A stretch of 64,000 nt of DNA, taken from positions 10,974,001-11,038,000 of the forward strand of contig OZ059899.1 in NCBI GenBank assembly GCA_964057225.1, written 5' to 3'. Under the pieces are notes generated by a model that worked only from the letters and a program-made list of their open reading frames with translations, ran no database searches and was not told the DNA's origin. The position numbers were made by a program, and so were the translations under genes. The DNA is from Auanema rhodensis. Lineage: Eukaryota; Animalia; Nematoda. This document shows, in pieces, positions 15,827 to 56,262 of the stretch (positions within the stretch are counted from its first letter, which is position 1; each line of letters starts with the position of its first letter).

Positions 15827-17805
15827 TCATGCTTTCTCTTTTTGATTTTTCATCCGTGGTAACCATAATTCATCTCCATCTTCGTTCTCTGATTCCGGTT
15901 CGCTATCGGTGTTATCTTGCTCGTTTCTTTTGATTACTCTTAGTATCTCTATATCGCTGTCCTCTTCTTCTTCTTCGTGATTGTTGCGTGTATTAGAGCG
16001 GGTATTGTGAGTGATATTTTGAGTCGCGTTTGAGAAGAGTTTGAGATTATCCTTGTGGATATCTTGTATCTTTCCTGATGAATTCCTTATCTGCACCTTG
16101 GATCCTTGTACGTTAATAACTTCGTAAGGTCCGTCATAGCTTTTCCTCAGTTTCTGACCAATTTTATGTGACTTTATTGTTGTCATCACCATGTCGCCGG
16201 GTTGAATGTTCCTTTCGTGCGTCCTTTGTGTTCTATCCTTCTTCTTTCTGGCGTTTTCTTGGTTTTGGGCGATACGTTCACGTATTATTTGGTCTATTTT
16301 CATCATTTGAGGTCTTCTCGTGAGTAATTCTTCCGAAATCTCTTTGATTTTTGTTATGGTTCCCGGTAATTCGGCATCAATTTTCATTCTGCATTCTTTT
16401 CCAAAAAGTGCTACGTATGGGGCTATGCCTGTTGTAGCATGCTGAATGTTATTGATAGCGAATGTAATTTTCGGCAATACGCTATCCCAGTCGCTTAGAT
16501 CTTCCTTCAAGTAGTGTGTTAATCCTTCCTCAAGAGTTCTGTGTAGTCTTTCGACTTGTCCGTTTGAGTTCTTTTGGTGAGGAAGGGTGGGTTCATGTTG
16601 AATTCCCAGTTTTGTACACATTTCTTCAAACTTTTGAGATACAAAATTAGATCCTCTATCGGTGATCAGTCGATGAGGCGGTCCGTATATGTATACAAAG
16701 TTGCGTAGAAATCTGTCAATTGTTATTTCTGTCGTAATTTGCGGTACTGCTATCGTTGTTGACCATTTAGTAAAAGCATCCTGGATGGTAATAACGTAAG
16801 TACAATTCCTTTTTGACGGGGGAAAAGGTCCCATTACATCCATATGAACTCGTTCAAAAGGCTTGGTCGGTATTTCAAATTGACCTATTGGCTGCACTGT
16901 CATAGAATGTGGGTCCTTCTTCCTTTGTGCGCATTTAATGCAGTTTTTGATATATATCATGATATCATTTTGCATGTTGGTCCAATAGAATCTCCGTAGG
17001 ATGGCTTCTTTAGTTTTATTAATTCCTTGATGCGCTGCGATTGTAGGATCTTCGTGAAATAATTCTATTATCTCGTCCTTGATTGGATGATCTTGTGGCA
17101 CAACGATTGCAGGATGTGGTTTCTTGTCTGTTGGTTTTGTGTAGAGTAATCCATTTATAACGCAATATCTATCGTTAGAGACCATTTTCTTTTGCGTTCT
17201 ATATTCGATGTCCGCGATTGTTTTCTTTATCCATAGAGTATTTTGTTGAATTTCTTTTATAGCAGGTGTATCAATAATATTTATTCTGATTGATTCTGCG
17301 TTTTTCTTTTTCTTCTTTTCCGGCTTTGCATCATTTGCTTCATCGCCTATATAACGTGACAATGCATCACATACTTTATTGAGCTGGCCCTCTCTGTACC
17401 TTATCTCAATGTCGTATTCTTGTATTACTAACTGAAATTTAGCAAGACGACCAAATAGGTCTCTGCGAGTTAGTAAACTTGTGAGAGGGCGATGGTCAGT
17501 GATACATATAGTATGCGTTCCCAGTATGTATGTGCGAAATTGATTCAGTGCGTATACTAACCCTAAGGCTTCAATTTCGATTGGTGCGTAATTGCGTTCC
17601 GCTTTTACCAGTTTTCTGCTGGCAAATGCGATAGGATGAAGATGCTTCAATGGTTGCGTGGGATCTTCTGGTTGCAATAATACTGCGCCCACTGCTATGT
17701 TGCTGCCGTCACTCTCGATAATGAATAATCGATCAGATTTTGGTGGACTTAATACAGGCGCTTGGGTGAGACTTCTTTTTAATCGATCTACAGCTTCCTG
17801 ATGTT
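15827..17805 (-). CDS. Pol C-terminal part (RNase H, integrase), out of frame after an internal RT deletion
   Basis: ESDGS..GAVLLQ, IAFASRKL, TDHRPL; integrase H..H/CIKC, HMDVMGP, ITDRGSNF, VERLHRT, GPY. Confidence 0.92.
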
Positions 17806-20800
17806 GCTTTTCTTGTATCAGAGATTATCAGCAGATCGTCCAAGTATACAAATAATTTGCAAGAGCATTTACTTTGCAAATATCTTACTGCTGTTTGAAA
17901 AGTATGAGGGGCTCCGCAGAGACCCATAGGCATTCTTTTATATTGATACGTGCCTGATGTTGTTGTAAATGCTGTTAAATGACGATCAGATTTACGTAGT
18001 GATATTTGAAAAAATCCTGATACTAAATCAAAGTTTGAGAAGAATTGAGCTCCAGCTGCCATGTCAACTATATCCGATATGCTTGGTATAACGTATGTTT
18101 GTTTACGCGTGACACTATTGAGGGCTCGAAAATCTGTCACGAACCTATATGTCTCATCCTTCTTCTTCACTAGCACAGCAGGGCTATTGAAGAGGGATGT
18201 AGAGGGTTCGATTATGCCTTGCTCTAGCATTTCTTTTACTTGCTTTTCCACTTCTTCCTGTTTACCAAGTGGAATCCTCGTTATTCTTGACCTTGGCATG
18301 TCCATATCCGATCTTAGTGGAATTGTATGCTCAATGGGTCCTTTAAATAGACCTATCTTCCTATCTTCATTAAGAAAAGCCTCACGATGGTTCTTAACTA
18401 TGTTTGTGAGCTCGTGCTTGTCTTCATTATTCAAATCTGCTTTATCCAGATTAAGGTCATTCATAAAATTTCTTGGAAAGTGGGGTAATTTATTCTCCCA
18501 ATCTGCTTCTGGTGGAATATATGGTTGCATAGGGTCTTCTTGTATTGTTTGCCAGCTTGGTACTTCTCCTATTGTTGCCTGCCCTATGACTGAATTAGCT
18601 TCCATAGCTAATGTTTTGTCCGTATTGTTACGGAAAACTACATATACTCCACTTGTCTCACGGAAAGCTGTTGGATAACTTGAAGCTAATGCATTTCCGT
18701 TGTCCCCTAAGATTACCACTTCGTTTGATTTGAGTGGTCTATCAGCTTTGATTGGAATAGTGGACTCTTCATCGGGTTGTATGATTCTTTTCTTCAAATT
18801 GATGATATTTATTGTTATTGCCGTTTGTTTAATGGCGTCCTGTTCAATTAAAGGGAGTGCGTAATTTCCGATCTCTAGCATCTTTTTCGATGGTTTTAAA
18901 CTGACATCAATGTTTTCACTATCGAGCGTGCTCATAAAGTCCATCCCAATAAGAGCAGGGGCTGGGCAATCACAGTCATTTGAGACCAAAAAGGTATGTT
19001 CTATCTCATAGCCAGCAATTTCGATGTTTAAATTTATTTTTCCGTATAATGTAAACGTTGTTTTGTTTGCTGCCATTGCCACTAATCGTCGCTTTTTGAC
19101 GTGTTGAGCCATGTTCAGGTATTTTAATGTCGATAGCCTGACATATGAGACTGACGAGCCTGAATCCCATAAAGCTAATATCAGCTTATCTTCCACTGAT
19201 ATATAGATAAGAGGTAGCTTTGTTTCTTTTGATTTAATAAAAGCAATAAATGGTATTGCTAGTGGAATGAATGTTACGAGCGCCGGGTAATACTGCTTCA
19301 TTATATTTTCTGGCATTGGTTGGTCTGGGCGGCTAACGAGTTCTAATGTTTCCTCGTAGCCTGGGGGCTCGTTGTCTGCTCTTTGAATATGCATGACTGG
19401 TAGTGGCATTGCTTTGAAAAAGTAGAATTTTCCGGCAAAGATGGTAACTATGATTGCTGCAATGATTAGAACAGTAGATCCTATTAATATTAAGGTTCTT
19501 TCAATTGTCCCCATTAAGAATTGTTTTATGCTATTCCAGGCTGTAGTTGTGAACTCAGTTGCTTTCGAAATAAATTCGCTGCCCTTTTTCAAAAGAATAA
19601 AGGCTGACGTTATCTTTGGGTCGTTGTGGATCGTATTTAGTACGTGATTTTGTCGTATTGAAGCTAAACTAGCTCCATACGCTATTGCGGTAGTCATTGA
19701 ATAGACTCTTGATGAAAGATTAGTATAAAGATGAGCACCTGTGAATTTTAAAGGCGTAACTTTATGTTGGTGGGCTCCATCAAAAAGTGTGATGGGATTG
19801 ACTTCCGCAGACCCATTAATGTTCATCCATTCCCCGTTTTTCTCATAAATATCAGTGGGTACGTGTTCGCAGTCGATTTCTTTCCCGTACGAGAGTAAAT
19901 CTCTTGATCCCGGTGCTGCGAAATATAATTTGTTGTCTTCGGTTGTTACTGGTGTCTCTAAGTAACATGTTTCATTGATTTTATGAGAGTGGTGAACGGT
20001 TTTAGGCTCTATTGGTAGGCATATATGAACATGAACTATTTCGCTGCCCACGAAACGCGCTGCTATGTCTTCTCTGCCAAGGATTGTTCTCATTGCTATG
20101 GTTGGCTCTATTTGGAGAATTGAACGCCACAATTCGAGATATCTATTTTGTATCTCGCATATGGATTCGTAAGATTCCATAAAATGCTTTTGCAATTCTT
20201 CCTGTATAAGAGTGGTTGCATATTGTAGATGATCTTGCGCTATTCTCTGAGATATATTCTGTTTATATTGTATCTCGTTGTTTACTTTGGAGCCTATATA
20301 ATGTGCTTGCGCTTGTACTGCTTTCGTTTCAATCTCCAAAGGTGGTGATGACGTTCTCTGCTTTCTTTGCGATCTTAAAGACATATCTGTGACCGTTGCA
20401 AACGTAGTAATAGGCTGTTCTTTGTGAACACCATATATTAATGTAACCGTTGTTGGCGCGCGCGTGGATGTTATGGCTTGAGTTGTATCGATCTCTGGCG
20501 TTGTTTGAGGGTCCTGGATTAGCTTTGTTACTTCCGTTGTTGTCGTTATATATTCAGTTTTGTCTGTCAGGCGTCTGGTTGAGTAGGGAGGTGTTCTTTT
20601 ATCCTCTAGTAGCGGTAGAAAGGTTTGAATGAGAAGATTTCGTGTATATTTGTTAGGACTTTTTGTTTGTTGATGGGGCCCAACAGGTATACCAAAATTA
20701 TTCTCCATATCTCGATATAATTTCTCTATATCTGGCAGGATAATAGTTGGTACAGGCAGATGTCGAAATCTTTCATCGTCTGCTCTGGCCGCTGTTCGAT

Positions 20801-23800
20801 TGGGTTTTATTGTACGTAGTTTGAGGACTTGGTGATATAGGTCAATTGTTTCTTTAATAATCAGTTGTTCCTTTTCGTTATTAGTTGATAATACGGGCCT
20901 GATTGGCGGCATGTTTACAAATGCTTTCAAAACTTCTTGTTTTGATGGCACCGACATGTTATTTTGAGCGAAAATGGTCGGTGTAAATGCCAACTCGAGC
21001 GCTATACTTTCGGTTCGCTCTCGATAACTTCCTTCTTTTGTGAGTATTTTTTCGTCAAATTCTTCTGCTGTTAATCTGTCGCCTATCTGCTCTAAAAGTT
21101 GCAGGGAGGTGAGGTATTTAACGGCTCCTCTTGTGGTAGCTGCCAGTTTATTTTGGGCGAAGAATTGAAGCATTGCTTCTTCCGGGTCGTAGAATTCATA
21201 TATTTTTAAGAATCTTTCTATTGATCTATCCGAAGTAGTGCTTCGTAGGAAGAATTTGAACTGCTCGGGATGTGCTGAGATCCACTTAACGATAGAATAT
21301 GTTGGATCTATCGTCCGTCTGGCTCGAATTATAGGAATTATTTGTGATATCCCAGGGTTACTCATTACTGGACGTAAAAATGGGTATGGGCATATGTTCA
21401 ATGTTAAAGTTTCGTAATCTTCTTGTTCTTTTATCCAGCTTTCGTCCAATTGCAGTGCGCATTGCGCTATAGCCCTTTTTTGACGCCTAGCTGGCAACTT
21501 TTTATATTCTCTTTCAATTAAGTTGTGTATATTACTGTCATTTGGATATTTTGGAAAGAGTATATAATTGCCCGTGGTTGATTGAAATATAGGTTGCGAA
21601 AAACATGATGTAATCTGTTTTGGAATTCGTTTATTGTCGATAACAAGGGCTGACTGCGTATTGGGAATCAGTATTATGCTGTCTCCAATGATGGCATCAT
21701 ATTCGCTCATGTCTATATAGTTGCATCTCTGTTCGTATGATTGGATTTCCCAGATGATCATGGAAGTATTGGATGCGCATTGGCCATGATGTGCAAGACA
21801 GCCTTCCGTATTGAGTAATAGATTTGTCAATATGGTGTCGTCTGGCATCCTGGTCATAACGCCTCTTTCCAAAACCAGTCGTTCTTTTTCTTCGCATTGT
21901 TCGTAATTGAATGAGCGCGCTGGAGAGAATGTAGGTTCGATTGTCGCGTATGTCAAGCTATCCAATTTAATCAGGTCTTCTGATTTCCATTTACGGTCGC
22001 GGACAGCCAGTCTACATTCGTTTTCTGTTGTTGGCTCAATTCGAACAATGGAGGAGTTATGATCTCTTAAAAATAGCAAATCCCTGATGCATATTTTATG
22101 TATTTCTTTTGAACATCGCCATGAATCCCATTCGTGAGCCGTCTGGTTTCTTGTATACAGATGTATGTTTGTGCGGAGGACATGTTTGGTAGGTGGTATT
22201 GTGCATTTCCTCAGGGGTGGGGGTATAAGGAGGGCTCCACCTGTAGCTTTAGTGCACATCTGATAAGCATCAGTTATAGTGATTAGTGATAAGATCACTG
22301 ATAAAGCTACTGCTAGTGTTAAGGGGGATATCAAGGTCAAATTATTGACTCTTGAGCCTCTTCCTCTACCTCTATTATTGTTGTTTCCCCTGAAGGGATT
22401 ATTACCGCGTTGACGGTTATCACTCTCCTGATTACGTGATAAGTTGTTATTTCTTTGATACCAATTTGGATTTGAGAAATTTCTACCGCGATTACCAAGA
22501 TTGCGGTTTCTTGCGAAAGAATTTTGCAGATTTTGTGGTTTCTGATTATTTGATGAATTTTGATAACTTTGATAATTTTGATAATTTTGGTAGTTTCTAT
22601 TGTTAAATGATTGATAGCCTCTACCGATTCCTCGCCTTCCGGTGTCGCGCCTGGGAGGGAATGTTCTATCGATTGCATTAACCAGTAGCGCCTGAGGGTC
22701 GGCTACTTGGTTAGCAATTGATTCCTCCCATCTGGCATTATCAATTGCCTCGGCAAACGTTTTTGGTTTAGCTCTGATTACCCCCGGACGTAATGTGTTT
22801 TTGAGACCGCGTAGAAAGGTGGATCTAAGAATATGGTCCTTGTGTGGGTCTGTATGGGAGAAAGCGTTTAAGCTTAGGCTTCGTAAAGTTTGTGCGAATC
22901 CATCTACTGATAGCTCGCCTTGGGTGGAATTCTGTAGCGTTATCAGCGCCGGATCTTGATTATACTCTGGGCATAGCCTAGAGGTAAGTTCTTCGATGAG
23001 TGTATTCCACGAGCCAGATGTCTTGATAGTATCGCTAAGCTGTGTATAAGCTTCTTCAGCTCGTTCGTTTTTAAGAAGTAATGGTAAGATTGTTAATCTT
23101 TCGGGCATAACTAAGCCTAAGGCGTTTGCAAAGGTGTTAAACTTGGCCACGAAGTCTCTAAAGTTGCGACTTCCGTCGTATATAGGGCAATATGGGGAGC
23201 TTAATGCCTGAGCAATGGTAGATTTACCCGCTCCTGGAAGCCGTGATGTTTCGGTCATTTCGGATGAGATGCCCTCAGGGTATGTGATAGGTGATATTAT
23301 CACTTCGCTCCTTGTTGGATCTTGATGAGTGTTTTCTATTGCCTTAGGGTTTCTGCTAGAGGAGCCTATTATAGGTGTAGTTGTTGCGAAACGGGCTCTT
23401 GGAACCTGGATGACTTTACCAGATGCCTGAGGCGATGTTCTATCAGTTGATCGTGAGCTAGGGATCGCACTATCTGATCTGTTAAGATTAGGATTATGTG
23501 AAGAAAACCGGGGTTTTGCTGTTCCGCTGGGTGTTGTGTTATCGCCTGGGGATAAGTTTAAAATCTTTATCAGTCGATTTGTTAAAGATCTTTTGTTTTT
23601 AAACTTATCAGTTGTTAATGATAAGGGTGAAGCTTCTTGTATGCCTTCGAGGCTGGCTTCTGCTGACAGAGTTTCTGTTGCGCGCTTACTGGGTGTTTTT
23701 GTCTTCCGCTTATTAGGGATATTCTTTTTGATCTTATCAGTGATTTTTGATAAGGTTGAAGGGTTGTCACTAGGTTGGGTGGGTTCTAAAGTTAGCGAAT

Positions 23801-24449
23801 GTGGTTGATTAATAGGCGTGGAAGACGCTTGCGGGCTTTGTGTTAACCCGAAGGATGGGGAAGGTGCGTTATCAGTGATAACTGATAAGTTCGACGCGTT
23901 TGGGTCTGAGGTTACCGGTGAGGCAGATGCGGTTGTCGGCTTTTTCTTTTGAATTTTTCGCAAATTTTTATTAGTATCAACTGAGCGTACCTTGGGATTT
24001 GTAGTTGGAGTTTGAGTGCTGTCGTCGGCTATGATGAAGTCCGGGTCTTCGTCGGTGTCGTCAGAAGGTGAATATGTACCTTCTCGGGGAGTATAGAACT
24101 TGTCGACTTGCGGCTTCGGCTTCTCGTCTGGTTGGTGCGGTTCTTCTATTTGAACACTGAGAAGTCGGGTGCGGCTTCGGGTACGACTTGCGACAGCAGC
24201 GTCACTGTTGGTATCGGACGGGTAAAGGGCTGGGAAAGCCGATGAGAATCTTTTGGCCACCTTTGTAGGACTTTTGGTTTGGAAAAACCGAGAATGGTGA
24301 GCTACGTGTGGGATGTTGATGTAAGGTGCGTAAGATTCTTTTAGATGTGTGTTGGGAGAGAGAGAGATTCGGGAGCAATAGGATAGTCGTGCTTCGCTGG
24401 GCGATGCGGAGGGTAAATGAGAGGGAGTTTTCCAAATCGTGGCCACCAA
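17733..24449 (-). CDS. Gag-Env-PR-RT polyprotein of element 2 (RT truncated after YLDD)
   Basis: S/T/P-rich N-terminus; capsid YDGSRNFRDFVAKF..FLRGL; RG/N-rich region; signal peptide, Cys-rich ectodomain, TM; protease LWDSGS; RT DFRALN, DLVSGFFQI, MPMGL, YLDD. Start codon uncertain. Confidence 0.93.
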   Translation of the reverse strand: MVATIWKTPSHLPSASPSEARLSYCSRISLSPNTHLKESYAPYINIPHVAHHSRFFQTKSPTKVAKRFSSAFPALYPSDTNSDAAVASRTRSRTRLLSVQIEEPHQPDEKPKPQVDKFYTPREGTYSPSDDTDEDPDFIIADDSTQTPTTNPKVRSVDTNKNLRKIQKKKPTTASASPVTSDPNASNLSVITDNAPSPSFGLTQSPQASSTPINQPHSLTLEPTQPSDNPSTLSKITDKIKKNIPNKRKTKTPSKRATETLSAEASLEGIQEASPLSLTTDKFKNKRSLTNRLIKILNLSPGDNTTPSGTAKPRFSSHNPNLNRSDSAIPSSRSTDRTSPQASGKVIQVPRARFATTTPIIGSSSRNPKAIENTHQDPTRSEVIISPITYPEGISSEMTETSRLPGAGKSTIAQALSSPYCPIYDGSRNFRDFVAKFNTFANALGLVMPERLTILPLLLKNERAEEAYTQLSDTIKTSGSWNTLIEELTSRLCPEYNQDPALITLQNSTQGELSVDGFAQTLRSLSLNAFSHTDPHKDHILRSTFLRGLKNTLRPGVIRAKPKTFAEAIDNARWEESIANQVADPQALLVNAIDRTFPPRRDTGRRGIGRGYQSFNNRNYQNYQNYQSYQNSSNNQKPQNLQNSFARNRNLGNRGRNFSNPNWYQRNNNLSRNQESDNRQRGNNPFRGNNNNRGRGRGSRVNNLTLISPLTLAVALSVILSLITITDAYQMCTKATGGALLIPPPLRKCTIPPTKHVLRTNIHLYTRNQTAHEWDSWRCSKEIHKICIRDLLFLRDHNSSIVRIEPTTENECRLAVRDRKWKSEDLIKLDSLTYATIEPTFSPARSFNYEQCEEKERLVLERGVMTRMPDDTILTNLLLNTEGCLAHHGQCASNTSMIIWEIQSYEQRCNYIDMSEYDAIIGDSIILIPNTQSALVIDNKRIPKQITSCFSQPIFQSTTGNYILFPKYPNDSNIHNLIEREYKKLPARRQKRAIAQCALQLDESWIKEQEDYETLTLNICPYPFLRPVMSNPGISQIIPIIRARRTIDPTYSIVKWISAHPEQFKFFLRSTTSDRSIERFLKIYEFYDPEEAMLQFFAQNKLAATTRGAVKYLTSLQLLEQIGDRLTAEEFDEKILTKEGSYRERTESIALELAFTPTIFAQNNMSVPSKQEVLKAFVNMPPIRPVLSTNNEKEQLIIKETIDLYHQVLKLRTIKPNRTAARADDERFRHLPVPTIILPDIEKLYRDMENNFGIPVGPHQQTKSPNKYTRNLLIQTFLPLLEDKRTPPYSTRRLTDKTEYITTTTEVTKLIQDPQTTPEIDTTQAITSTRAPTTVTLIYGVHKEQPITTFATVTDMSLRSQRKQRTSSPPLEIETKAVQAQAHYIGSKVNNEIQYKQNISQRIAQDHLQYATTLIQEELQKHFMESYESICEIQNRYLELWRSILQIEPTIAMRTILGREDIAARFVGSEIVHVHICLPIEPKTVHHSHKINETCYLETPVTTEDNKLYFAAPGSRDLLSYGKEIDCEHVPTDIYEKNGEWMNINGSAEVNPITLFDGAHQHKVTPLKFTGAHLYTNLSSRVYSMTTAIAYGASLASIRQNHVLNTIHNDPKITSAFILLKKGSEFISKATEFTTTAWNSIKQFLMGTIERTLILIGSTVLIIAAIIVTIFAGKFYFFKAMPLPVMHIQRADNEPPGYEETLELVSRPDQPMPENIMKQYYPALVTFIPLAIPFIAFIKSKETKLPLIYISVEDKLILALWDSGSSVSYVRLSTLKYLNMAQHVKKRRLVAMAANKTTFTLYGKINLNIEIAGYEIEHTFLVSNDCDCPAPALIGMDFMSTLDSENIDVSLKPSKKMLEIGNYALPLIEQDAIKQTAITINIINLKKRIIQPDEESTIPIKADRPLKSNEVVILGDNGNALASSYPTAFRETSGVYVVFRNNTDKTLAMEANSVIGQATIGEVPSWQTIQEDPMQPYIPPEADWENKLPHFPRNFMNDLNLDKADLNNEDKHELTNIVKNHREAFLNEDRKIGLFKGPIEHTIPLRSDMDMPRSRITRIPLGKQEEVEKQVKEMLEQGIIEPSTSLFNSPAVLVKKKDETYRFVTDFRALNSVTRKQTYVIPSISDIVDMAAGAQFFSNFDLVSGFFQISLRKSDRHLTAFTTTSGTYQYKRMPMGLCGAPHTFQTAVRYLQSKCSCKLFVYLDDLLIISDTRKATSGSCRSIKKKSHPSACIKSTKI
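19420..22340 (-). other. Class III (herpesvirus gB/chuvirus G-like) envelope glycoprotein domain
   Basis: Signal ..LSLITITDA|YQMC; RRQKR; ICEIQNRYLELWRSILQIEPTIAMRTILGREDIAARFVGSEIVHVHIC; CYLETPV; TM LILIGSTVLIIAAIIVTIF. Confidence 0.8.
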
Positions 24450-25499
24450 TCTGACTCCGCCTATCTACCGTAAGCTTATTATAGTTAATGATGTTTATCT
24501 CTTCTCAAAAACTATTTTTATCCACTCTTGCACTTTCCTCTAAATTTGTTTTCTTACTGCTCTAGAATCTTCAAAAAAAAACTTTATTCATGTCGTCCCC
24601 TTTGTACTTTTGCGGCCTTTGGACATTTATTTTAAGGTTAGAAACAAAAGAAAAGAAAAGAAAGAAAAAAAATGGATTTCCAACGTTATAATCCCACTGG
24701 CATGACTTATGTCCTGTGGAAATTATACGAATCCATCGTTGAATACGATGGAGAAGGAGTTTTGGCTTATAGGCCACATCCTGATATAATTTTGATGGTT
24801 TGTGTATCTCCATTTTATGTTTGATTATTTGATTACTTTAGTTTATCGAAGATCTCCAAATGTATTATTTGGGGCAGGGCCATATAAACTTTGCCACCTT
24901 CGTAGATGTAGCTCCCGAAGTGGAGCTTGTTGGTCGAAGGTGCTTAGTTGATCTATGCGCTCATGTATATAATGGTAGGGCCGGTTTATTAACCGCACGT
25001 CCTTGGGCCTGGTACCAGGAAAAGAGTCATTTTTATTATTATTTATTATATAGATTATTGTTTAAAATCTATATTGTTCATGATGACTCATTATTTGGTT
25101 TGGAACTTAGGGCTTCGCGAGGTTTAGAATATAGTGAAGATTTAATTGCGAGCGAAACTCCTATGTTTCTTGCCTCTGAGTTTCGAACTCGGTTGCAAAT
25201 CAAATATGGGTATTGACTGAATAAAGTTTGTACTCTGTGTTTTTATTTTTGTGCACTTTGCTCTGTTTTTGTCAAGAAAACGGACTTATGTTTTCAATCT
25301 TTTCCTCATTCCTTTTCCCTTAAATAGCATGTTTTGCTCAAAATGTTTTCGACATTGTGCATGCTAATGAGGTTTGAGGAGAGTTATTGAAAAGGCTGTC
25401 CTTTTTCTTGATCAAAATAAGCAAAAGTGCGTTTTCCTAAGCGAATTTCTTTTTTAAAAATGAGAAAAATACGTCTATTTTTAAACATTTCCAATTTAC

Positions 25500-26125
25500 T
25501 TAGGATTACTGTAGGAAATAAGGGGTATCTTATGAGTTGAAACAACGAAATGATTTGAGGAAGGTGACATAATCTACGGGGATAAAATCCGTAGCAGTTA
25601 TGCTTCCGCCAACTTGACCTGACTGTCAAATAAGAGCTGAGAAGTCTTATTGCAGATTTACCAGGCTTTTTCGGACTAGTGTGGTCTCTTTTTATATTCA
25701 ATTTATGTAACCGTTTTTGGTTTCCCGCAAAATAATATGTAAAATGATCTTTTACGTCTGAATATAATAATTTTTCAAAATTCTAGTCCTGACCACAAAA
25801 TATACAAACTATAATCGATTGCGCGCGTCTTATAAATTTTTGTTCCAATGATCAAACTTCTCATATGCCCAAAAAAAAATGTGAACAATTATAATTTCTC
25901 GTTTGGCGAAATTGTCCTCTATTTCAATCCAAACGTCCTCAAAATGGCATGAGAAGCGGTACAAGATACGATAAAGAAAAGGGTGGACATTCAGACGGTT
26001 TTTAAATTGAGGACGGCGGGCAAAAATTTTATTGGTCCTATCTCGCATTTAAGCGAGATCCCTTGTATCTGTACCTTAAAACAAATTGGCGCCTTCATTT
26101 TGTTGTTTCAAGTGGAGGAATTTAT
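25500..26125 (-). ncRNA. Conserved structured cis-RNA in the 5' leader of element 2 (function unknown)
   Basis: Blocks shared with 46195-46830, with compensatory base changes. Confidence 0.65.
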
Positions 26126-26199
26126 AATTTAGAATGCAAAAATGGACTTTTACAATAAAAAAAAATTTTTTTTTTTTTTTTTTCAAAAGATGAGTTCGA

Positions 26200-26212
26200 G
26201 GTGGAACCTCCA
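26200..26212 (-). promoter_or_regulatory. Primer binding site, tRNA-Gln
   Basis: TGGAGGTTCCACC directly abutting the 5' LTR; complement of GGTGGAACCT-CCA. Confidence 0.85.
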
Positions 26213-43142: not shown

Positions 43143-43216
43143 TGCCGCCAGCAAGGGTCGAATCTGCGACCTTGGGCTTATTAGACCCACGCTCTAACCG
43201 ACTGAGCTATGGCGGC
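43143..43216 (-). tRNA. trnI: tRNA-Ile(AAT), T-stem variant
   Basis: G53A, C62T. Confidence 0.85.
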
Positions 43217-43809: not shown

Positions 43810-43883
43810 TGCCGCCAGCAGGGGTCGAACCTGCGACCTTGGGCTTATTAGACCCACGCTCTAACCGACTGAGCTATGGCGGC
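43810..43883 (-). tRNA. trnI: tRNA-Ile(AAT)
   Basis: Consensus cloverleaf. Confidence 0.96.
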
Positions 43884-44477: not shown

Positions 44478-44551
44478 TGCCGCCAGCAGGGGTCGAACCT
44501 GCGACCTTGGGCTTATTAGACCCACGTTCTAACCGACTGAGCTATGGCGGC
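44478..44551 (-). tRNA. trnI: tRNA-Ile(AAT), G24A variant
   Basis: D-stem GAAC. Confidence 0.88.
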
Positions 44552-45467
44552 TACGAAAGTACGAAATAACAAAGCGCTGATTATAGGAAACGTGAATGAA
44601 TGCAGATATTCTCAATTCCGATTCATTAACTAGATCGTGGTCAGCATTTTACAACATTGATAAAATAGAAACTGAGAAAAAACATCAACAAATGACACTA
44701 TTAACTTGGTTTTTTGAACAGCTTTTTTATATTTCTTTTTTCACTATGAGAGAACTTATATTTATTGCTTTTTCAAAATTTTCCATTTTTAACATTATAC
44801 ATCTTGACTATCACACATTGAGAACAACAGTTGGCAATGTTGGTTGTCACGTCATATTTCATGCAGTTAGATTTTCAGACACATTAATACCTTTAACCAT
44901 TCTTCTTATGAGTTTTGTAACGATAGATCGTAATAGGATATGAATTGCTATAATATGAAAAAATACAAGACATAGTCAACATTGATTTCCCCAAATAGTA
45001 TCATGTTTGCTTGTTATTCAATTAGAACACTTTTTTTTGATTGTTTTCTTGAAATATTCTTTTTTTTTCTTTAACAAAGTTATGACTGAGATTAGAAAAC
45101 TAGATCGTGGTCAGCATTTTACAACATTGATAAAATAGAAACTGAGAAAAAAACATCAACAAATGACACTATTAACTTGGTTTTTTAACATCTTTTTTAT
45201 ATTTCTTTTTTCACTATGAGAGAACTTATATTTATTGCTTTTTCAAAATTTTCCATTTTTAACATTATACATCTTGACTATCACACATTGAGAACAACAG
45301 TTGGCAATGTTGGTTGTCACGTCATGTTTCATGCAGTTAGATTTTCAGACACATTAATACCTTTGACCATTCTTCTTATGAGTTTTGTAACGATAGATCG
45401 TAATAGGAAATGAATTGCTATAATATGAAAAAATACAAGACATAGTCAACATTGATTTCCCCAAATA

Positions 45468-45900
45468 GTATCATGTTTGCTTGTTATTCAATTAGAACAC
45501 TTATTTTTTGATTGTTTTCTCGAAATATCGTTCCATGCGGACGCCTAGTGTATGTAGTTAGTGTGTTAGAGTTAGACTGACTAGAGGACTGAGGAATAGC
45601 TCCGCCTTACCTCGGTTCTCTAACCAGGAGTTCGCCTCTTAGCAAGCCCATGGACGGTTTGTATCTAGTTTATGATATCATCTATCATATCATCTGTATC
45701 ATGTTTGCTTGTTATTCAATTAGAACACTTATTTTTTGATTGTTTTCTCGAAATATCGTTCCATGCGGACGCCTAGTGTATGTAGTTAGTGGGTTAGAGT
45801 TAGACTGACTAGAGGACTGAGGAATAGCTCCGCCTTACCTCGGTTCTCTAACCAGGAGTTCGCCTCTTAGCAAGCCCATGGACGGTTTGTATCTAGTTTA
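45468..45900 (+). repeat. 205-bp tandem duplication spanning the array/LTR junction, with 23-bp filler
   Basis: 45468-45672 repeated at 45696-45900 with one substitution; filler at 45673-45695. Confidence 0.93.
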
Positions 45901-46121
45901 GTTTATCTTGTACATTAGTCATTGTCTTGTAAATGTAGTCTACTCCATTCTTGTATTATTGTAGTGTAATGTTGTTGTATCGTGTATAATAAATCTATCC
46001 TTTTCCTTATCTTATGATATCCTTATGCTCTGTTTTCATACGCTACACTTATGGAATACTATCCGCGTAGTTGAGCAGACTACAATGGTCTGTTCAATAT
46101 ACGCAGGAGCATAATGGAACG
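45757..46121 (+). repeat. 5' LTR of element 3 (365 bp)
   Basis: CGTTCCAT...ATGGAACG termini, homologous to element 2 LTR; AATAAA 45988-45993. Confidence 0.93.
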
Positions 46122-46134
46122 TGGAGGTTCCACC
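46122..46134 (+). promoter_or_regulatory. Primer binding site, tRNA-Gln
   Basis: TGGAGGTTCCACC directly after the LTR. Confidence 0.85.
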
Positions 46135-46194
46135 TCGAACTCACTTTTGATCAAAATTAACCTCGAAAAGTTTATTTTTTGAAACTAAATTAAA

Positions 46195-46830
46195 ATTTCC
46201 TCCACGGTTAGCAACTAAATGTAGGCGCCAACTTGTATTTAGGATACAGATACAAGGGATCTCTTTTGATTGAGAGATAGGACAAAAATTTTTCAAAAAT
46301 TGCCCGCCGTTCTCATATTTAAACCGTCTGAATGTCCACCCTTTGTAATACCGTATCTCGTACCGCTTCTTATGCATTTTTTTTTGAGGACGTTTGGACT
46401 AAAATAGAGAACGATTTTACCAGACGAAAACTAATCGAATTTTGATTACATTTTGCAATGAGAAGAATAACTCTTGGAAACAAAATAACATAAACGCGCG
46501 CATAACTATAACATTTTTAATTTTGTGGTCAGGACTAGCATACTTCAAATTATGATCATATTCAGACGCACAAGATCACAGATTGAATAATATTTTGCGG
46601 GAAATTGACTGAAAGTCAGAGAAAATCATTAAGATAGACCACACTAGTCCGAAAAATCCTGGTAAATCTGCTCAGTGAGACTTTTTTTTAGCTCTTACTT
46701 GACAGTCAGGTCAGGTTGGCGAAAACATAACTGCTTTGGATTTTATCCCCATAGAGTATGTAACCTTCCTCAACTCATTTTGTTGCATACATCATAAGAT
46801 AACCACATATTCCTACCGTAACCTTAAAAT
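46195..46830 (+). ncRNA. Conserved structured cis-RNA in the 5' leader of element 3 (function unknown)
   Basis: Covarying helices relative to element 2. Confidence 0.65.
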
Positions 46831-47381
46831 TTTCACATATTTCTGTTAAAACCGGAATAATTTTCGTATTCTTCAGCAAATAAGCGAAAAAAAAAAAAAA
46901 AAAATTTTCTCGTTCTTTTGTTGTTCATATTTGATTGCGAAATTTTATTTAATAATTTTACTTCAAAAAGGTACAATCGAAAAAAAAAAAAGAAAAAAGC
47001 GATGTAATTTTCTATTCATTTGTGAACGACAAAGGAAACACAAAGTAAACTTATGCCTCATACACTTTTTGTATTGTGAAGGTTATTCAAAATGGTTGCA
47101 ATTCCATTTTGAAATTGGTTCCAAGTGACTAAAAGAACCGGAAACACAAAAGAAAAAAAAAAATTTTGAAAAGTACACATGTACAACAAACACCGTCATT
47201 ACGGATTTAATAGAAGGACCGAGTATGTCAAATTATAAACACGATTGCTGATTGCCGAATACGGTGGATGGGCGGAGTTAGATCTCTGGCCAAGATTGAA
47301 AATCCCTTCTCATTCACCCTGCAGCATCGCCCCAGCGACGCACGAAAAGTTTCTACTTTAATACAACTCTCATCCTATCTA

Positions 47382-50300
47382 CAGAATACTCAGCTACTAA
47401 CGTCAACATCCCTCACGTAGCCCACCACTCTCGGTTTTTCCAAACCAAGAGTACTACAAAGGTGGCAAAGAGATTTGCTTCGGCTTTTCCAGCCCTTCAC
47501 CCATCAGATTCTAACAGCGACGCTACCGTCGCTAGCCGTACAAGAAGCCGCACACGACTCCTCAGTGTTCAAATAGAAGAGTCTAATCAGCCGGACGAAA
47601 AGCCGAAACCACAACTCGACAAATTCTATACTCCACGCGAAGGTACATATTCACCTTCTGACGACACCGACGAAGACCCGGACTTCATCATAGCCGACGG
47701 CAACGCTCAAACTCCCACTACAAACCCCAAGGTACGCTCATTTAATACTAATAAAAATCGAAAAATTCAAAAAGAAAATCCGACAACCGTATCTGCCTCT
47801 CCTGTTAACTCAGATCCAAACACTTTATCAGCTATCACTGATAACACACTCTCTCCTTCTATAGAGCTAACCCAGAGTCCATAGGCGTATTCCGCAACTA
47901 CAGACCTTCGAAACTCTTCAAATCAAGAGCTCACCGAAGCTAATACTAGCCAATCTCCTTTATCAGCTATCACTGATAAGCTCAAAAAGAATATTTCCAA
48001 TAAGAGGAAAACCAGCACACCCCGTAAACGAACAAAAGTAACCACTGAGGCAGAAGCACCCTCCGCAGAAGCTTCAGAAGTTTCACCGTTATCACTTACA
48101 ACTGATAAGTACAAAAACAAGAGATCGTTAACAGCCCGACTGATAAAGATCTTAAACTTATCTCCAGGTGATAAAGCAACAACTCCCAATACCGTAAGAC
48201 CTCGATTTGCTTCACATAACTCTTATCTTAACAAATCAGATAGCGCAATCCTTAGCTCCCAATCAACTCCTATAACACCGCCTCAGGCATCTGGCAGGGT
48301 TATCAAGGTCCAAAAAGCTCGTTTTACAACAGCGGTTCCCGTTATAAGCTCTTCAATCGATTCAGAGACCGGTGGCTCTTCAGAGACAAGAAGAAACACT
48401 TACCCAGAAGCATCAATAAGTGAAGTGATAACATCACCTATCACACACCCCAAAGGCATTTCATCAGAAATGACTGAAACACCACGTCTCCCGGGAGCTG
48501 GTAAATCAACCATTGCTCAGGCATTAAGCTCTCCATACTGCCCCATATATGATGGAAGTCGTAACTTTCGAGATTTCGTTGCGAAATTTAACACCTTCTC
48601 TAATGCCTTAGGCTTAGTGATGCCTGAGAGATTAACTATCTTGCCTCTACTTCTCAAAAATGAAAGAGCGGAAGAAGCTTATACACAGCTGGCCAATGAA
48701 ATAAAGACAGCTGGACCTTGGATCACACTGATCGAAGAGTTAACATCGAAGCTTTGCCCTGAATATAATCAGGACCCGGCACTGATAACGCTTCAAAATT
48801 CCACCCAAGGCGACTTATCAGTGGATGGATTTGCGCAAACCCTACGTAACTTAAGTTTGAACGCATTTTCTCAGAGTGATCCTCACAAGGATCACATCCT
48901 CCGATCAACATTTTTGCGAGGACTCAAAAACAGCATACGCCCTGGGGTAATCAGAGCAAAACCCAAAACTTTTTCTGAAGCTATTGATAACGCCCGTTGG
49001 GAAGAATCAATAGCTAATCAAGTAGCTGACCCTCAAGCGTTACTTGTAAACGCAATAGAAAGAACATTCCCACAAAGGAGAGATCCTGGTAGGCGAGGAA
49101 ACGGTAGAGGATATCAATCATTCAACAATAAAAATTATCAAAATTATCAAAAAATTATCAAAATTCATCAAACTATCAAAAACCTCAAAATTATCAAAAT
49201 TCATTTGCAAGAAATCGCAATTTTGGTAATCGCGGTCGAAATTTTTCAAATCAACCTAACTCGAATTGGTATCAAAGAAATAATACTTTATCACGCAACC
49301 AGGAGATAAACGATAACCGTCAACGCTTAAATAATCCCTTCAGGGGAAATAACAACAACAGAGGAAGAGGAAGAGGCTCTAGAGTCAATAACTTGACTTT
49401 AATATCTCCTTTAACATTAGCAGTAGCTTTATCAGTAATCTTATCACTGATCACCACTGTGGAAGCTTATCAGCTATGCACAAAAGCTACCGGAGGAGCC
49501 CTTCTGATTCCACCTTCCCTTAGAAAATGTTCCATACCATCAACAAAACACGTGCTTCGGACAAGAATTCATCTTTACACAAGAAATCAAACAGCTCACG
49601 AATGGGACGCCTGGAGATGCTCTAAAGAGGTTCATAAAATATGTATAAGAGACCTCCTATTTCTTCGAGACTACAACAGTACAGTTGACAGAATCGAAAA
49701 AATACCAGCCGCAGAATGCAGGTTGGCAGTACGAGATAGGAAATGGAGCTCTGAGGAATTGAAAAAACTTGATAGCATTACATATGCAACAAACGAGCCA
49801 ACATTTTCGCCCGGACGATCGCTCAATAATGAACAATGCGAAGAAAAACCTCGACTGGTACTAGAACGAGGAGTAATGACAAGAATGCCAGATGACACTG
49901 TAATATCGAATTTAATTTTGAATACTGAAGGCTGTCTTTCGCATCACGGAGAATGTGCGTCTAACACTTCTATAATCATTTGGGACAAACCTTACGAGAA
50001 TCGTTGTAATTACATTGACATGAGCGAATATGATGCTATAATTGGAGACAGCATCATTCTCATCCCAACAACGCAGTCTGCACTTGTCATTGAGAACAAA
50101 AAAGTCCCGAAAGAAATATCATCTTGTTTCCAACAACCAATTTTTCACACTACAACTGGAAATTATATTCTCTTCCCGAAGTTCCCAAACGACATCAATA
50201 TACATGAACTGATCGAAAGAGAATTCAAGAAATTACCGCCAAAAAGGACAAAAAGAGCCATTGCAGAATGCAAGGTTGAAATGAACAAAGAATGGATTCA

Positions 50301-53300
50301 ACAACAGGAAGATTTTGAAACAATAATTTTAAACATCTGCCCATATCCATTTCTCCGACCAGTTATGAGCAACCCGGGAATTTCCCAAATTATCCCACTC
50401 ATGCGTAGCAGACAAATAGCAGATCCTTCATACTCTGTTGTCGACTGGATTTCCGCACATCCTGAGAAATTCTATTTCTTTCTTCGAAATCCCGTCTCAG
50501 ATAAATCAATACAACGATTTTTCAAAATTTACGAACTGCGTAACCCTGAAGAGGCTATACTCTTCTTTTTGGCACAAAAAGAGCTGGCAGCAACCACAAG
50601 AGGCGCTATCCGGTACCTTACTTCTCTACAACTATTAGAGCAGATCGGCGACAGATTGTCAGCGGAAGAATTTGACGAAAAACTCTTAAAGAAAGATGGA
50701 TCATACCGCGAAAGAGCAGAAAGCATAGCATTAGAACTAGCATTTACGCCCGTAGTATTTGAAAACAACTTGTCGGTACCATCAAAACAAGAAGTTTTAA
50801 AAGCCTTTGTGAACATGCCGCCTACGAGGCCCAGTTTAACAACTGATAGTGAGGAGGAGAGAAGAGTACTTGAAAACACTCTCGACTTATATCACAACAT
50901 AATCAAACTACGCGTGGCTAGGCCAAATAGAACGATAGCCGCCAAGGATGATGAAAGGTTTCGTCATCTGCCGGTTCCTGCCACCAAACTACCAGATATA
51001 CATACATTATACCACGATATAGAGAACAATTTTGGTATACCGGTGGGCCCACATCCTCGTATACAGAATCCTAGCAAAGATACGCGAGAATTGCTCATTC
51101 GGACATTCCTACCTTTGCTAGAAGACACACGCAAACCACCTTACTTGAGTAGAAGACTGCCTATTACCACCACTCAAATGACACCACTATCAGGGCCTCC
51201 GGAAACAATTTACAAAGAACCTACAAAAAGTCAGACGACCTATGCACCACAGCCAGTAACAAAAACCGCTACCTTGGTGCAGCAAACAACAAGATTTGAT
51301 GAAACTACTGAGACAACCACGACACACGCAACAAGCACGATGTTATATGCTTTGTACACTGAGAAAACACCTTCAACAATGACACCCATATCCGAAACCA
51401 CGCTACGCTCCTTAAGGAAACAAAGAACATCATCGCCTCCTATAGAAACAAAAGCGATTCAGGCTCAGAGCAATTATATAGCATCAAAAGTGAACAATGA
51501 AATGCAAACTAATCAAAATACATCTCGAAAAATAGCACAAGATCATCTGCAATACGCTACCACAATTGTGCAGGAAGAACTACAACGACATTTTGTGGAA
51601 TCTTTTGAATCCATATGTGAAATCCAGAATAGATACCTGGAATTATGGCGTTCTATTTTACAAATAGAGCCCACAATTGCAATGAGGACCATACTAGGTA
51701 GAGACGATATTGCAGCGCGTTTTGTGGGCAGCGAGATAGTACATGTTCACATATGTCTACCTCTGAAGCCTAAGACTGTTCATTATTCACATAAGATCAA
51801 CGAAACTTGCTATCTAGAGACGCCAGTAACAACAGAGGAGAATAAATTGTATTTTGCTGCACCAGGATCGAAAGATTTATTGACACATGGAAAAGAAATA
51901 AATTGCGATCACGTACCAACTGATGTATATTCAAAAGATGGCGAGTGGATGAATGTCAATGGGTCGGTAGAAGTGAACCCCATCTCACTTCTTGATGGTG
52001 CTCACCATCATCAAATTACACCATTGAAATTTACAGGAGCTCATCTTTATACGAATCTTTCATCACGAATATACTCAATGACTACAGCAATCGCATACGG
52101 AGCTAGTCTTGCATCAATACGACAAAATCACGTATTACATACCATTCACAATGATCCTCAAATAACATCGACATTTAATCTTTTGAAAAGGGGCAGCGAT
52201 TATATCTCGAAAGCTAAAGAATTTACATCTACAGCCTGGAACAGTGTCATAGATAGTTTGATAGGGTCAATTGAAAAAACACTCATATTCATAGGATCCG
52301 TGGTCATAATTATCGCATTGACCATTATTGTTATCGTCATCGCTAAACTATACTTCTGTAAAACAATGCCGTTACCTATCATGCACATTCAAGGCATGGA
52401 TCATGAGCCCCCAGGCTATGAAGAAACATTGGAACTTGTTAGTCGAGCAGATCAACCAATGCCAGAAAGCATAATGAAACAATACTATCCAGCTCTGGTG
52501 ACATTTATTCCATTAGCAATGCCATTCATCTCTTCTATTAGAGCAACGGAAACAAAGTTACCTTTGATATACATATCAGTAGAGGACAAGCTGATACTAG
52601 CACTATGGGATTCAGGCTCATCAGTCTCATATGTTAGGCTATCGACACTAAAATATTTAAATATGGCTCAACATATTAAAAAGAGACGTTTAGTTGCAAT
52701 GGCTGCTAATAAATCAACATTCACATTATATGGAAAAATAGAACTCATTATTGAAATTGCTGGTTATGAAATCGAACACACATTTTTGGTCTCGAGCGAT
52801 AACGATTGCCCAGCCCCAGCGTTAATTGGACTCGACTTCATGAAAACGCTCGATAGCGAAAACATCGACGTCAGCCTGAAACCATCCAAAAAAACGCTCG
52901 AGATTGGTAACCACGCTCTTCCTTTGATTGAACAAGAAGTCATTAAACAGAAATCAATAACTGTAAACATCATCAATTTAAAAAGACGTATACTACAGCC
53001 TGAAGAAGAAGCTCCTATACCAATCAAAACAGACAGGCCACTCGAACAAAACGAAGTGGTAGTCTTAGGAGACAACGGAAGCGCGTTAGCCACCAGTTAT
53101 CCAACAGCGTTTCGTGATACATGTGGAGTATATGTTATATTCAGAAACAATACAGATAAAACGATAGAAATAGAACCCAACTCGGTAATTGGGCAAGCAA
53201 ACATAGGAGAAATCCAGTCCTGGCAGTCCATCAAGAACGAGCCAACAACGCCTTATATACCACCCGAGGCAGACTGGGAAAACAAATTACCACACTTTCC

Positions 53301-56262
53301 CAGAGATTTCATGAAAGACCTTAACCTTGAGAAAGCTGACCTAACAAAGGAAGATAAACAAGAACTAACAAAAATAATCGAACAACATAGGGAAGCTTTT
53401 CTAAATGAAGATAGAAAAATAGGCTTATTCAAAGGACCCGTCGAACATACTATTCCATTAAGAACGGACATGGATATGCCAAGACCAAGAATAACACGTA
53501 TTCCACTTGGAAAACAAGAAGAAATAGAAAGACAAATCCTAGAAATGCTTGAACAAGACATTATTGAACCATCTACATCTTTGTTCAATAGCCCTGTAGT
53601 ATTGGTCAAGAAGAAAGACGATACTTATAGGTTCGTGACAGATTTTCGAGCCTTAAATAACGTAACACGCAAGCAAACATATGTAATACCAAGCATTTCG
53701 GACATAGTTGACATGGCAGCGGGAGCTAAATTCTTCTCAAACTTCGACTTAGTATCAGGATTCTTTCAAATATCTTTACGGAAATCAGATCGACGATTAA
53801 CAGCATTTACTACAACATCAGGAACGTATCAATACAAACGTATGCCTATGGGTCTCTGTGGAGTCCCACATACATTTCAAACAGCTGTAAGATACTTGCA
53901 AAGTAAATGTTCTTGCAAACTATTTGTCTACCTGGACGATCTATTAGTCATATCAGATACAAGAGAACAACATCTCAAAGACATCGACGAATTATTGCAC
54001 GCAGTAGAAAAATTAGGAATGAAAATAAAGCTCAAGAAATGCGCTTTTGCACAACCAGAAGTGAAATTCTTAGGACTAATAGTTGGACGACAAGGAATGA
54101 AGCCAGATCCTCAAAAGGTCGCGGCTATACAGGACTATCCTGCACCTAAGAACGCAACAGGAGTACGCGCTTTCTTAGGAATGGTTGGATTCTTTCGAAA
54201 ATTTATAAAAGATTTTGCACGGATCGCAAGTCCTTTATACGACTTAACAAAGGCAGAGACTGAATTTATATGGAATAAAGAACATCAAGAAGCTATAGAT
54301 CTCCTAAAAAGAAGTCTTATACAGGCACCCGTGTTAAGCCCACCAAAATCAGATCGCTTATTTATCATTGAAAGCGACGGGAGTAACATTGCCATAGGTG
54401 CCGTATTACTACAACCTGAAGATCCAAGACAACCTCTAAAGAATCTACATCCAATCGCATTTGCAAGCAGAAAATTAGTAAAAGCAGAAAGGAATTATGC
54501 GCCTATAGAAATAGAAGAGCTAGGCCTAGTGTACGCGCTAAATCAGTTTCGAACATATATTCTTGGAACACATACAATATGCATTACGGACCATCGACCT
54601 CTTACTAGCTTACTAACGCGAAGAGACTTATTTGGACGACTCGCGAAATTTCAGCTAGTAATCCAAGAATACGATATCGAGATAAGATATAGAGAAGGCC
54701 AATTGAACAAAGTATGCGATGCTTTATCCCGATACATAGGAGAAGAAGCCAACGACGCAAGGCCTGAGACGAAGAAGAAGAAGAAAAAGGAAGAAATTCA
54801 CATAAATGCCATAAATACACCAACAATAAAGGAGCTTCAACTAAACACCCCTTGGATTAAAAGAACGATAACGGAGATAGAATATAGAGCACAAAAGAAT
54901 ATGACAGCAAACGATAGATACTGCGTTATAAACGATTTGCTCTATACAAGACCAACAGACAAAAAGCCTCATCCTGCAATCGTTATACCACAAGACCATC
55001 CAATAACGGACGAAATTATCAAATTATTTCACGAAGATCCCACCATAGCAGCACATCAAGGAATAAATAAGACAAAGGAAGCAATATTAAGAAGATTTTA
55101 TTGGACAAACATGCAGAATGACATCACAATGTTTATCAAAAACTGCATAAAATGTGCGCAAAGAAAGAAGGATCCCCATTCTATGACAGTTCAACCAATC
55201 GGACAATTTGAAATACCAAGTAAACCATTCGAACGGGTTCACATGGATATTATGGGACCATTCCCTCCCACACGAAGAAATTGCACCCATGTAATTACCA
55301 TACAAGACTCATTCACTAAGTGGGCGACAACAATAGCAGTTCCGTGTATTACAACAGAAATTACCATCGACAGATTTCTAAGGAATTTTGTATACATTTA
55401 TGGACCACCCCAGCGACTGATCACCGACCGAGGATCCAATTTTGTATCAAAAAAGTTCGAAGAAATGTGTAAAATGGTTGGAATAATACATGAACCTACC
55501 CTTCCTCATCAATAGAACTCTAACGGTCAAGTCGAAAGACTACATAGAACGTTAGAGGAAGGGTTAACACACTATATGAAAAAAGACCTAAGCGAATGGG
55601 ATACCATTTTACCCAAGATTACTTTCGCGATCAACAATATTCAGCACGCTACAACCGGAATTGCACCATATGTAGCACTATTCGGAAAAGAAGGCAGAAT
55701 GATACTCGATGCCGAATTACCAGACACCATACGGAGAATACAGGAAATTTCTGATGAACTACTAGCAAGAAAGCCACAAATGATGAAAAGAAACCAAATA
55801 ATTCATGACCGAATAGCGCAGAATCAAGAAAATGCAAAGAAAAAGAAGGACCAAACACAAAGAACGCGCGACAGAAATATACAACCAGGAGATATGGTCA
55901 TGACCACTATAAAATCACATCAAATTGGTCAGAAACTACGAAAAAGCTACGATGGACCCTTCGAAGTCATCAATGTCGAAGGATCTAAGGTCCAAATAAG
56001 GAATGGAGCAGGAAAAATTCAAGACATTCATAAAGACAACCTCAAATTATTCTCTAATTCGGAACAAGACAGCGCTTACAATACCAGAGCGAGCAAATGG
56101 AAACAACAAGCCGAGGAAGAAGACGACAGCGATATTGAGGTCATCGAAGTAATAAAAGGGAACAAGGGAAGCGACTCAGAAACAGAACCAGAATCAGAAA
56201 TGGAGGATGGAAACGAACTATGGTTACCGACTAATACGAACCGACAGAGAATAAAAAAGTAA
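47382..56262 (+). pseudogene. Gag-Env-Pol polyprotein of element 3, disrupted
   Basis: Collinear with element 2; TAG at 47882-47884, frameshift near 49150, TAG at 55513-55515 inside integrase. Fragments 47462-47884, 48425-49309, 49393-55515 (env, PR DSG at 52609, RT YLDD 53929-53940, RH, IN) and 55576-56262. Confidence 0.92.
49393..52360 (+). other. Class III gB-like envelope glycoprotein domain of element 3
   Basis: Signal ..ITTVEA|YQLC, KRTKR, ICEIQNRYLELW, CYLETPV, TM LIFIGSVVIIIALTIIVIVI. Confidence 0.8.

Follow-up and report, generated by a model that had tools for sequence, protein, structure and literature searches.

The DNA considered here, 64,000 nucleotides (nt) of the nematode Auanema rhodensis (assembly GCA_964057225.1, contig OZ059899.1, positions 10,974,001 to 11,038,000 of the forward strand; hereafter the window, numbered from its first letter), is occupied by a tandem array, head to tail, of over 45 near-identical minus-strand tRNA-Ile(AAT) genes. 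The array unit measures 664-667 bp, and at different phases of it three envelope-bearing retroelements of the long-terminal-repeat (LTR) type interrupt the array. Two of these, elements 2 and 3, show a mutual identity of about 75-78%, and their 5' leaders share a non-coding domain of about 600 nt, located between the primer-binding site and gag. The comparison of the two copies indicates that this domain is conserved as a folded RNA of the sense strand, and we lean, with some reserve, toward a role for it as a Psi-like signal for the dimerisation and packaging of genomic RNA. The elements and the parts of their leaders are as follows.

14790-26557, minus strand: element 2
26213-26557, minus strand: 5' LTR of element 2, 345 nt, identical to the 3' LTR at 14790-15134
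25500..26212, minus strand: primer-binding site and leader domain as found in element 2
45757 to ~56909, plus strand: element 3
45757..46121, plus strand: 5' LTR of element 3, 365 nt, aligning with both LTRs of element 2 and beginning CGTTCC as in element 2
46122..46134 (length approximate), plus strand: primer-binding site of element 3, within the invariant block 46121-46143
46195..46830, plus strand: conserved leader domain of element 3, with homology to element 2 running from the LTR through 46827
46831..47267, plus strand: spacer of element 3, A-rich, about 440 nt, not alignable with the element 2 spacer at 24465-25499

The original prediction for this locus had proposed a large RNA with several pseudoknots in a non-coding 5' leader, and the placement is borne out by the anatomy of both elements. 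In each, a word beginning with TGG, the primer-binding site, directly follows the LTR, and the conserved domain forms the first part of a leader that extends from 46122 to 47267 (1146 nt) in element 3, whose gag ATG lies at 47268, and from 26212 to 24465 (1748 nt) in element 2. The tRNA-Ile of the surrounding array was considered as the primer and rejected, as its 3' end does not match the primer-binding site. The non-coding nature of the domain is likewise upheld, since no open reading frame (ORF) is shared between the two leader copies. The copy at 25500-26212 in element 2 is 74% identical to that of element 3, and the domain itself shows about 76% identity, with blocks of 80-88%, as compared with 52-55% at the third codon positions of these two elements; since an identity of about 76% is maintained against the latter figure, and next to a spacer that cannot be aligned, the sequences indicate that the domain is under purifying selection. 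The element 2 spacer (24473-25499, minus strand) is some 600 nt longer than that of element 3, neither spacer has a match elsewhere in the window, and an antisense ORF of 118 amino acids within the element 2 spacer has no Pfam match. No copies of the domain are present in the window beyond those of elements 2 and 3.

As to the folding of the domain, the helices of the original prediction had been chosen post hoc, and the tests against chance were selected to be independent of that choice. The comparative tests rest on two copies, elements 2 and 3, and the support that they provide is collective rather than specific to any one helix. The first line of evidence comes from the 32 invariant blocks (363 nt in total), in which reverse-complementary words are enriched, with 14 words of six letters against 5.2 expected, seven of seven letters where 0.97 would be expected (P = 0.006, and 0.002 in a first run) and one of nine letters against 0.02 expected, whereas direct, reversed and complement-only words among the same blocks are at chance (four direct repeats of six letters against 4.8 expected, and none of seven letters against 0.7). 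Another line of evidence is presented by local hairpins. When variable alignment columns were permuted among the variable positions (500 permutations, hairpins of at least 7 bp with a span of up to 45 columns), the five hairpins kept in both copies compared with 0.85 expected, a number reached in 0 of 500 permutations, and three of the conserved local hairpins carry double changes, compared with 0.15 expected (P = 0.002). The opposite strand retains one such hairpin, as opposed to the five of the sense strand, because many of the changes are kept as G-U pairs. The energy of the consensus fold points in the same direction, being -109.5 kcal/mol for the sense strand as compared with -59.1 ± 6.0 for column shuffles (z = -8.4), with z = -4.4 for the antisense strand; as the column shuffle does not preserve dinucleotides, the absolute z values are generous, and the difference between the strands is the sounder measure. 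Three conserved stems of at least 9 bp possess at least four G-C pairs, and two or more of these were found in 0 of 300 shuffles. Stems of all ranges kept in both copies are also in excess (103 against 79.5 expected).

The helices are given below in element 3 coordinates. The pair probabilities are those of the nested consensus ensemble of the two copies, calculated by a method that cannot draw knots.

46121-27/46199-205, plus strand: primer-binding-site stem, 7 bp, invariant; pair probability 0.91
46226-35/46712-21, plus strand: long-range closing stem, 10 bp, two one-sided changes held through G-U; 0.98
46259-65/46272-78, plus strand: hairpin H1, 7 bp, with a variable loop of 6 nt; 0.99
46309-14/46407-12, plus strand: helix H2; 0.03
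46325-35/46558-68, plus strand: helix L1, 11 bp, invariant, long-range; 0.13
CCCGC/GCGGG, plus strand: invariant helix; 0.15
46366-73/46458-65, plus strand: enclosing helix, 8 bp, around 46391-46426, one change held only through G-U; 0.45
46391-46426, plus strand: two-part hairpin, 7 + 6 bp, with a loop of 8 nt; 0.96
46524-30/46637-43 and 46532-38/46644-50, plus strand: two-part match in crossing order, each part 7 bp and invariant; 0.07 for the first half and 0.77 for the second
46674-80/46693-99, plus strand: hairpin H3, one double change, a further one-sided one, and an indel in the variable loop; 0.94
46697-703/46710-16, plus strand: alternative hairpin, two one-sided changes, overlapping H3
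46734-39/46749-54, plus strand: hairpin H4, 6 bp; 0.65

All of the motifs quoted in the original prediction were found in place in both copies. Its helix set amounts to 71 pairs, of which 62 are invariant, four are kept after a one-sided change, four are kept after a double change and one is broken, and shifting the partners by 1-3 columns leaves no more than 21-29 of these 71 paired. The compensatory changes claimed between elements 2 and 3 were recovered in four helices, H1 to H4, one double change in each. In H1, the double change (G-C to U-A) is accompanied by a one-sided change (C-G to U-G), and the hairpin folds the same way in both copies (z = -1.9 and -3.5). In H1 and H3 alike, the stems hold while the loops vary. 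For H4 (CTACGG/CCGTAG in element 2, CTTTGG/CCATAG in element 3), the claim stands in part, as the double change is present but element 3 has one pair broken. The two-part hairpin at 46391-46426 retains 13 of 13 pairs in both copies, through one double and two one-sided changes; its arm 46391-97/46420-26 has one difference between the copies, over which pairing is retained only through G-U, the fold is identical in the two copies (z = -4.05 and -3.92), and sliding the partners leaves 31-54% paired. The loop word of this hairpin, 46407-12, is at the same time the 3' arm of H2, and it changes together with 46309-14. However, this single long-range compensation proves nothing alone, because a background of about six stems with a double change, over all ranges, is expected by chance. 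The long-range closing stem is of a strength found in 1% of shuffles, and L1 is comparably rare (1.7% of shuffles). One of the invariant blocks, 46658-46670, contains the word GGTAAAT.

The proposed pseudoknots need to be considered separately. The invariant long-range pairs do exist, with L1 extending to 11 bp and with CCCGC/GCGGG present, and GTGGTC and GGACTAG do match GACCAC and CTAGTCC in crossing order, as had been claimed. The crossing helices are nevertheless invariant and so display no covariation, save for the one double change in 46309-14/46407-12, and their scores in the nested ensemble are low because they conflict with nested helices, which, for a method that cannot draw knots, does not by itself count against them. 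The two halves of the match 46524-38/46637-50 are joined by 1 and 0 nt, and, from the geometry of ordinary A-form helices, it is doubtful that both halves would form at once in one molecule, as this would be strained. Moreover, several of the segments in question have more than one conserved partner. One example is 46325-37, which can pair with 46558-68 (as L1) or with 46388-99 (as 46326-37/46388-99). Another is 46308-14, whose conserved partners are 46407-12, the invariant word 46386-92, which is equally good, or 46279-83. A third is 46644-53, which can pair with either 46532-38 or 46393-401. A further rival pairing is 46248-58/46339-58. As the conserved partners exclude one another, they suggest that the RNA adopts alternative conformers, or that two molecules pair, and not that a single rigid knot forms. 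Of the compact tertiary RNA with multiple pseudoknots that had been envisaged, the large structured RNA is supported, by its conserved sense-strand helices; the case for multiple pseudoknots is weaker, consisting of invariant helices and one covarying pair, with rival pairings present. It seems unlikely to us that L1, 46309-14/46407-12 and the two halves of 46524-38/46637-50 are all formed together, within one compact RNA of some 600 nt. If such an RNA did exist, it would represent a new class of large tertiary-structured RNA, specific to the envelope-bearing retroelements of nematodes, and it could have a role beyond packaging, for example in ribosome recruitment or as a regulated switch between translation and encapsidation.

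The nature of the carrier elements bears on the possible functions of the domain. Their coding regions are the following.

47268..56262, plus strand: coding region of element 3, encoding gag, class III glycoprotein, protease, reverse transcriptase (RT), RNase H as well as integrase
15827..24464, minus strand: coding region of element 2, with the same domain order

In Pfam terms, gag is followed in both elements by a fusion glycoprotein of class III, and this in turn by protease, RT, RNase H and integrase; the glycoprotein matches both Monjiviricetes_fusion (53 and 62 bits, with a cut-off of 27) and the herpesvirus gB ectodomain, and there are further matches to RVT_1, RT_RNaseH, Integrase_H2C2 and rve. 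The LTRs, the primer-binding site and the domain order are those of gag-env-pol Ty3/gypsy elements with a gB-type glycoprotein, and the carrier is thus a Ty3/gypsy-type, envelope-bearing endogenous retrovirus-like element of the nematode gag-env-pol type. Non-canonical endogenous retroviruses of nematodes with the order gag-env-pol were reportedly treated by Sacco et al. in 2022 (J Gen Virol), the source cited for them. Ty3/gypsy elements with the same order are reported from nematodes, bryozoans and flatworms (PMC13524379, Chary and Hayashi 2026). The elements of this window resemble the nematode gag-env-pol retroviruses in having LTRs, a primer-binding site, gag, and a class III glycoprotein that precedes protease, RT, RNase H and integrase, but while the nematode elements described in PMC13524379 possess separate ORFs, in element 2 a single frame holds gag, env and pol. 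The gB/Monjiviricetes-type glycoprotein is found between gag and protease-RT, in the same frame, in both elements (17733-24464, minus strand; 49393-55515, plus strand), and how one frame can yield a membrane glycoprotein as well as a cytosolic Gag-Pol is a question that this arrangement poses. In a protein search with the whole ORF, the sole named relative of the glycoprotein part came from the nematode Auanema sp. JU1783, a protein with 41% identity; when the glycoprotein piece of 751 amino acids was searched alone, no protein match was returned, although the same residues inside the whole ORF had matched that one nematode protein.

What may the domain do in such an element? Of the functions listed in the original prediction, packaging is the one that fits its position best. 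We propose that the leader RNA, starting at the primer-binding site, would form a domain of about 600 nt closed by 46226-35/46712-21, with several hairpins and long-range helices inside, and that this domain would act in cis on the full-length RNA, in the manner of the retroviral Psi and dimer-linkage region and of the 5' domain of the yeast element Ty1, presenting sites for the pairing of two genomic RNAs and for recognition by Gag, which would lead to encapsidation. The stem 46121-27/46199-205 may, in addition, set the accessibility of the primer site. The invariant word CGCGCGC (46495-46501), which is self-complementary and lies within a stretch of 27% G+C, is a candidate for an intermolecular contact. 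We favor dimerisation and packaging, by analogy and as somewhat the better bet, because the position of the domain, the selection on a sense-strand fold, the primer-site stem and the alternative pairings all match what is seen in retroviral and Ty1 leaders: the domain lies between the primer-binding site and gag, and its structure is conserved with compensatory changes. In retroviruses, the Psi region between the primer-binding site and gag adopts alternative conformers and forms stems that involve the primer-binding site (review PMC5035971). The domain described here shares with it the same genomic place, the alternative conformers and the stems involving the primer-binding site, but, unlike retroviral Psi, it has no match to a retroviral leader in Rfam, no assignable splice donor or dimer-initiation hairpin, and a Gag without a zinc knuckle. 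In Ty1, the 5' region harbors Gag-binding sites, palindromes that dimerisation requires, and a long-range pseudoknot (PMC6844567; PMC5454406), and the likeness to the TIPIRT region of this element is that of a structured RNA of several hundred nt around the primer-binding site, with long-range helices and a proposed pseudoknot. Ty1, however, belongs to the Pseudoviridae, and its domain runs into gag, whereas the domain here is wholly non-coding and has no sequence likeness to it; and while Ty1 possesses the PAL palindromes and primer-binding boxes, palindromes are not enriched here, and a common function would be assumed by analogy.

A number of observations weigh against this reading, or against the fold on which it builds. 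The gag of elements 2 and 3 lacks a CCHC knuckle. Palindromes, the usual motif of dimer initiation, are not enriched in the domain (4 against 2.65 expected), and the invariant ones that are present, GGCGCC, CGCGCGC and ACTAGT, do not lie in predicted loops, CGCGCGC (46495-501) being outside any predicted hairpin loop. Over all ranges, the excess of double changes is mild for stems of 6 bp or more (12 against 6.8, P = 0.07). The whole-domain fold of element 3 on its own is not better than that of its shuffles (z = -1.14), and that of element 2 has z = -3.98, with 20 shuffles for each of these single-sequence folds, making them weak evidence. A shuffle test of pair counts on the best hairpin, a test that is powerless with two rows, gave counts as high as observed in 258 of 500 shuffles, and with two sequences no single helix reaches significance.

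Among the alternatives to packaging and dimerisation, the main rival is control of translation, through an internal ribosome entry site (IRES) or a similar platform that would let ribosomes reach gag without scanning. Leaders of 1146 and 1748 nt, with 11 upstream ATGs in element 3 and 22 in element 2, would be hard to scan, and some insect errantiviruses, which like the elements here are Metaviridae with an envelope gene and a functional non-coding 5' untranslated region (UTR), are reported to possess an IRES in it, as with Idefix and gypsy (review PMC3383448). However, from an IRES a kept, short distance to gag would be expected, and the distance here is about 440 nt in element 3 versus about 1035 nt in element 2, over a stretch that is not alignable and itself contains upstream ATGs; the upstream ATGs are also fewer than composition predicts (11 against 20; 22 against 30), a hint that some scanning matters. 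In the Rfam searches, the whole window yielded tRNAs only at the gathering threshold, and for 45700-47400, Rfam 15 at E <= 10 gave three sub-threshold chance matches, far below gathering, to the 5' UTR of a tombusvirus, lying on the opposite strand, and to H/ACA snoRNAs, with no leader, IRES or ribozyme family among them, in agreement with the original prediction, which had recognised no known family. An IRES, one of the functions which that prediction had listed, fits poorly and seems unlikely to us. Somewhat less likely is a role in RNA processing or export, as a splice donor separating translated from packaged RNA, for example, or as an export element. The long leader with its many upstream ATGs would be in line with such a role, and the GGTAAAT of the invariant block 46658-70 resembles the consensus of 5' splice sites, but no conserved acceptor-like word precedes gag in the two leaders, and one short word cannot account for a conserved structure of some 600 nt.

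A function at the level of DNA, with the conserved blocks as promoter-proximal, enhancer or insulator sites for proteins, also deserves consideration, as the 5' UTR of the Drosophila gypsy element contains an insulator of 12 repeated binding sites (PMC3383448), and as blocks that are invariant, GC-rich and set in AT-rich DNA would be apt sites for proteins to bind. We regard it as improbable: the domain is not enriched in repeats, as the gypsy insulator is, direct repeats being at chance and reverse complements enriched, and its changes are compensated, several of them only via G-U on the sense strand. The absence of any function, with similarity and pairings reflecting shared descent and chance, is a more improbable reading still. 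It is favored by there being two copies only, by the weak all-range excess of double changes and by the ordinary fold energy of element 3, but it would leave unexplained the leader identity as compared to third codon positions and to the unalignable spacer, as well as an enrichment that is specific to reverse complements and a local-hairpin test with P <= 0.002. A ribozyme had been suggested as well. In favor of such a catalytic RNA, self-cleaving or autonomous in some other way, are only the size of the domain and the number of possible tertiary pairings, and, with no Rfam 15 ribozyme family matching at E <= 10 and thus no catalytic core recognised, we find it hardly credible.

If dimerisation and packaging are indeed the role of the domain, nothing established is overturned, as retroelements are expected to carry such signals. 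The leader RNA is undescribed, yet it is a feature of an expected kind, a cis-acting retroelement leader in a little-studied clade; in PMC13524379 the term 'UTR' is absent, and a search by terms found no leader RNA structure described there. Descriptions of the envelope-bearing retroelements found in nematodes have to date dealt with their proteins, and it is the selection, pairing and priming of their genomic RNA, a gap in this picture, that the domain addresses. A comparatively supported leader domain represents a concrete RNA to be probed and to be traced across the family, and it could become a covariance model for finding and classifying elements whose proteins have decayed.

In both carriers in the window the coding region is broken. 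The coding region of element 3 is found in five open pieces, implying at least four interruptions (stops and frame changes), and its aligned part, read against the open frames of element 2, contains one frame change and two stops. That of element 2 is in two open pieces, separated by a single interrupted zone that lies between RT and RNase H; read against the frame of element 3, this zone likewise contains one frame change and two stops. The gag frame of element 2 does not open with an ATG. From about 47383 on, the copies differ mainly at third codon positions (identity of 0.88, 0.97 and 0.72 by position). Although the reading frames of element 2 are not intact, its LTRs are identical across 345 nt; a purine tract precedes the 3' LTR, and the insertion site of the element lies in a tRNA-Ile gene, a few nt in from its 5' end, and shows a target duplication of 4 bp (14786-14789, 26558-26561). 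Element 3 has no 3' LTR, this having been deleted, the phase of the array unit at its right junction (56880-56925) differs from that at the left junction, and some 135 nt of the LTR start are duplicated, along with array DNA, just upstream of it (45098-45756).

The remainder of the window is made up of the array and of the third retroelement.

9550-14789, 26558-45092 and 56910-64000, minus strand: segments of the tRNA-Ile array
1 to ~9549, plus strand: element 1, of the BEL/Pao type, with its 5' end beyond the window

At the DNA level, element 1 has no similarity to elements 2 and 3. It possesses a single frame of 2686 amino acids, with three CCHC-like knuckles in the gag part and, at the C-terminus, a fusion glycoprotein of the phlebovirus G2-like type (class II). 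Two unrelated types of envelope-bearing retroelements are thus found side by side in one window.

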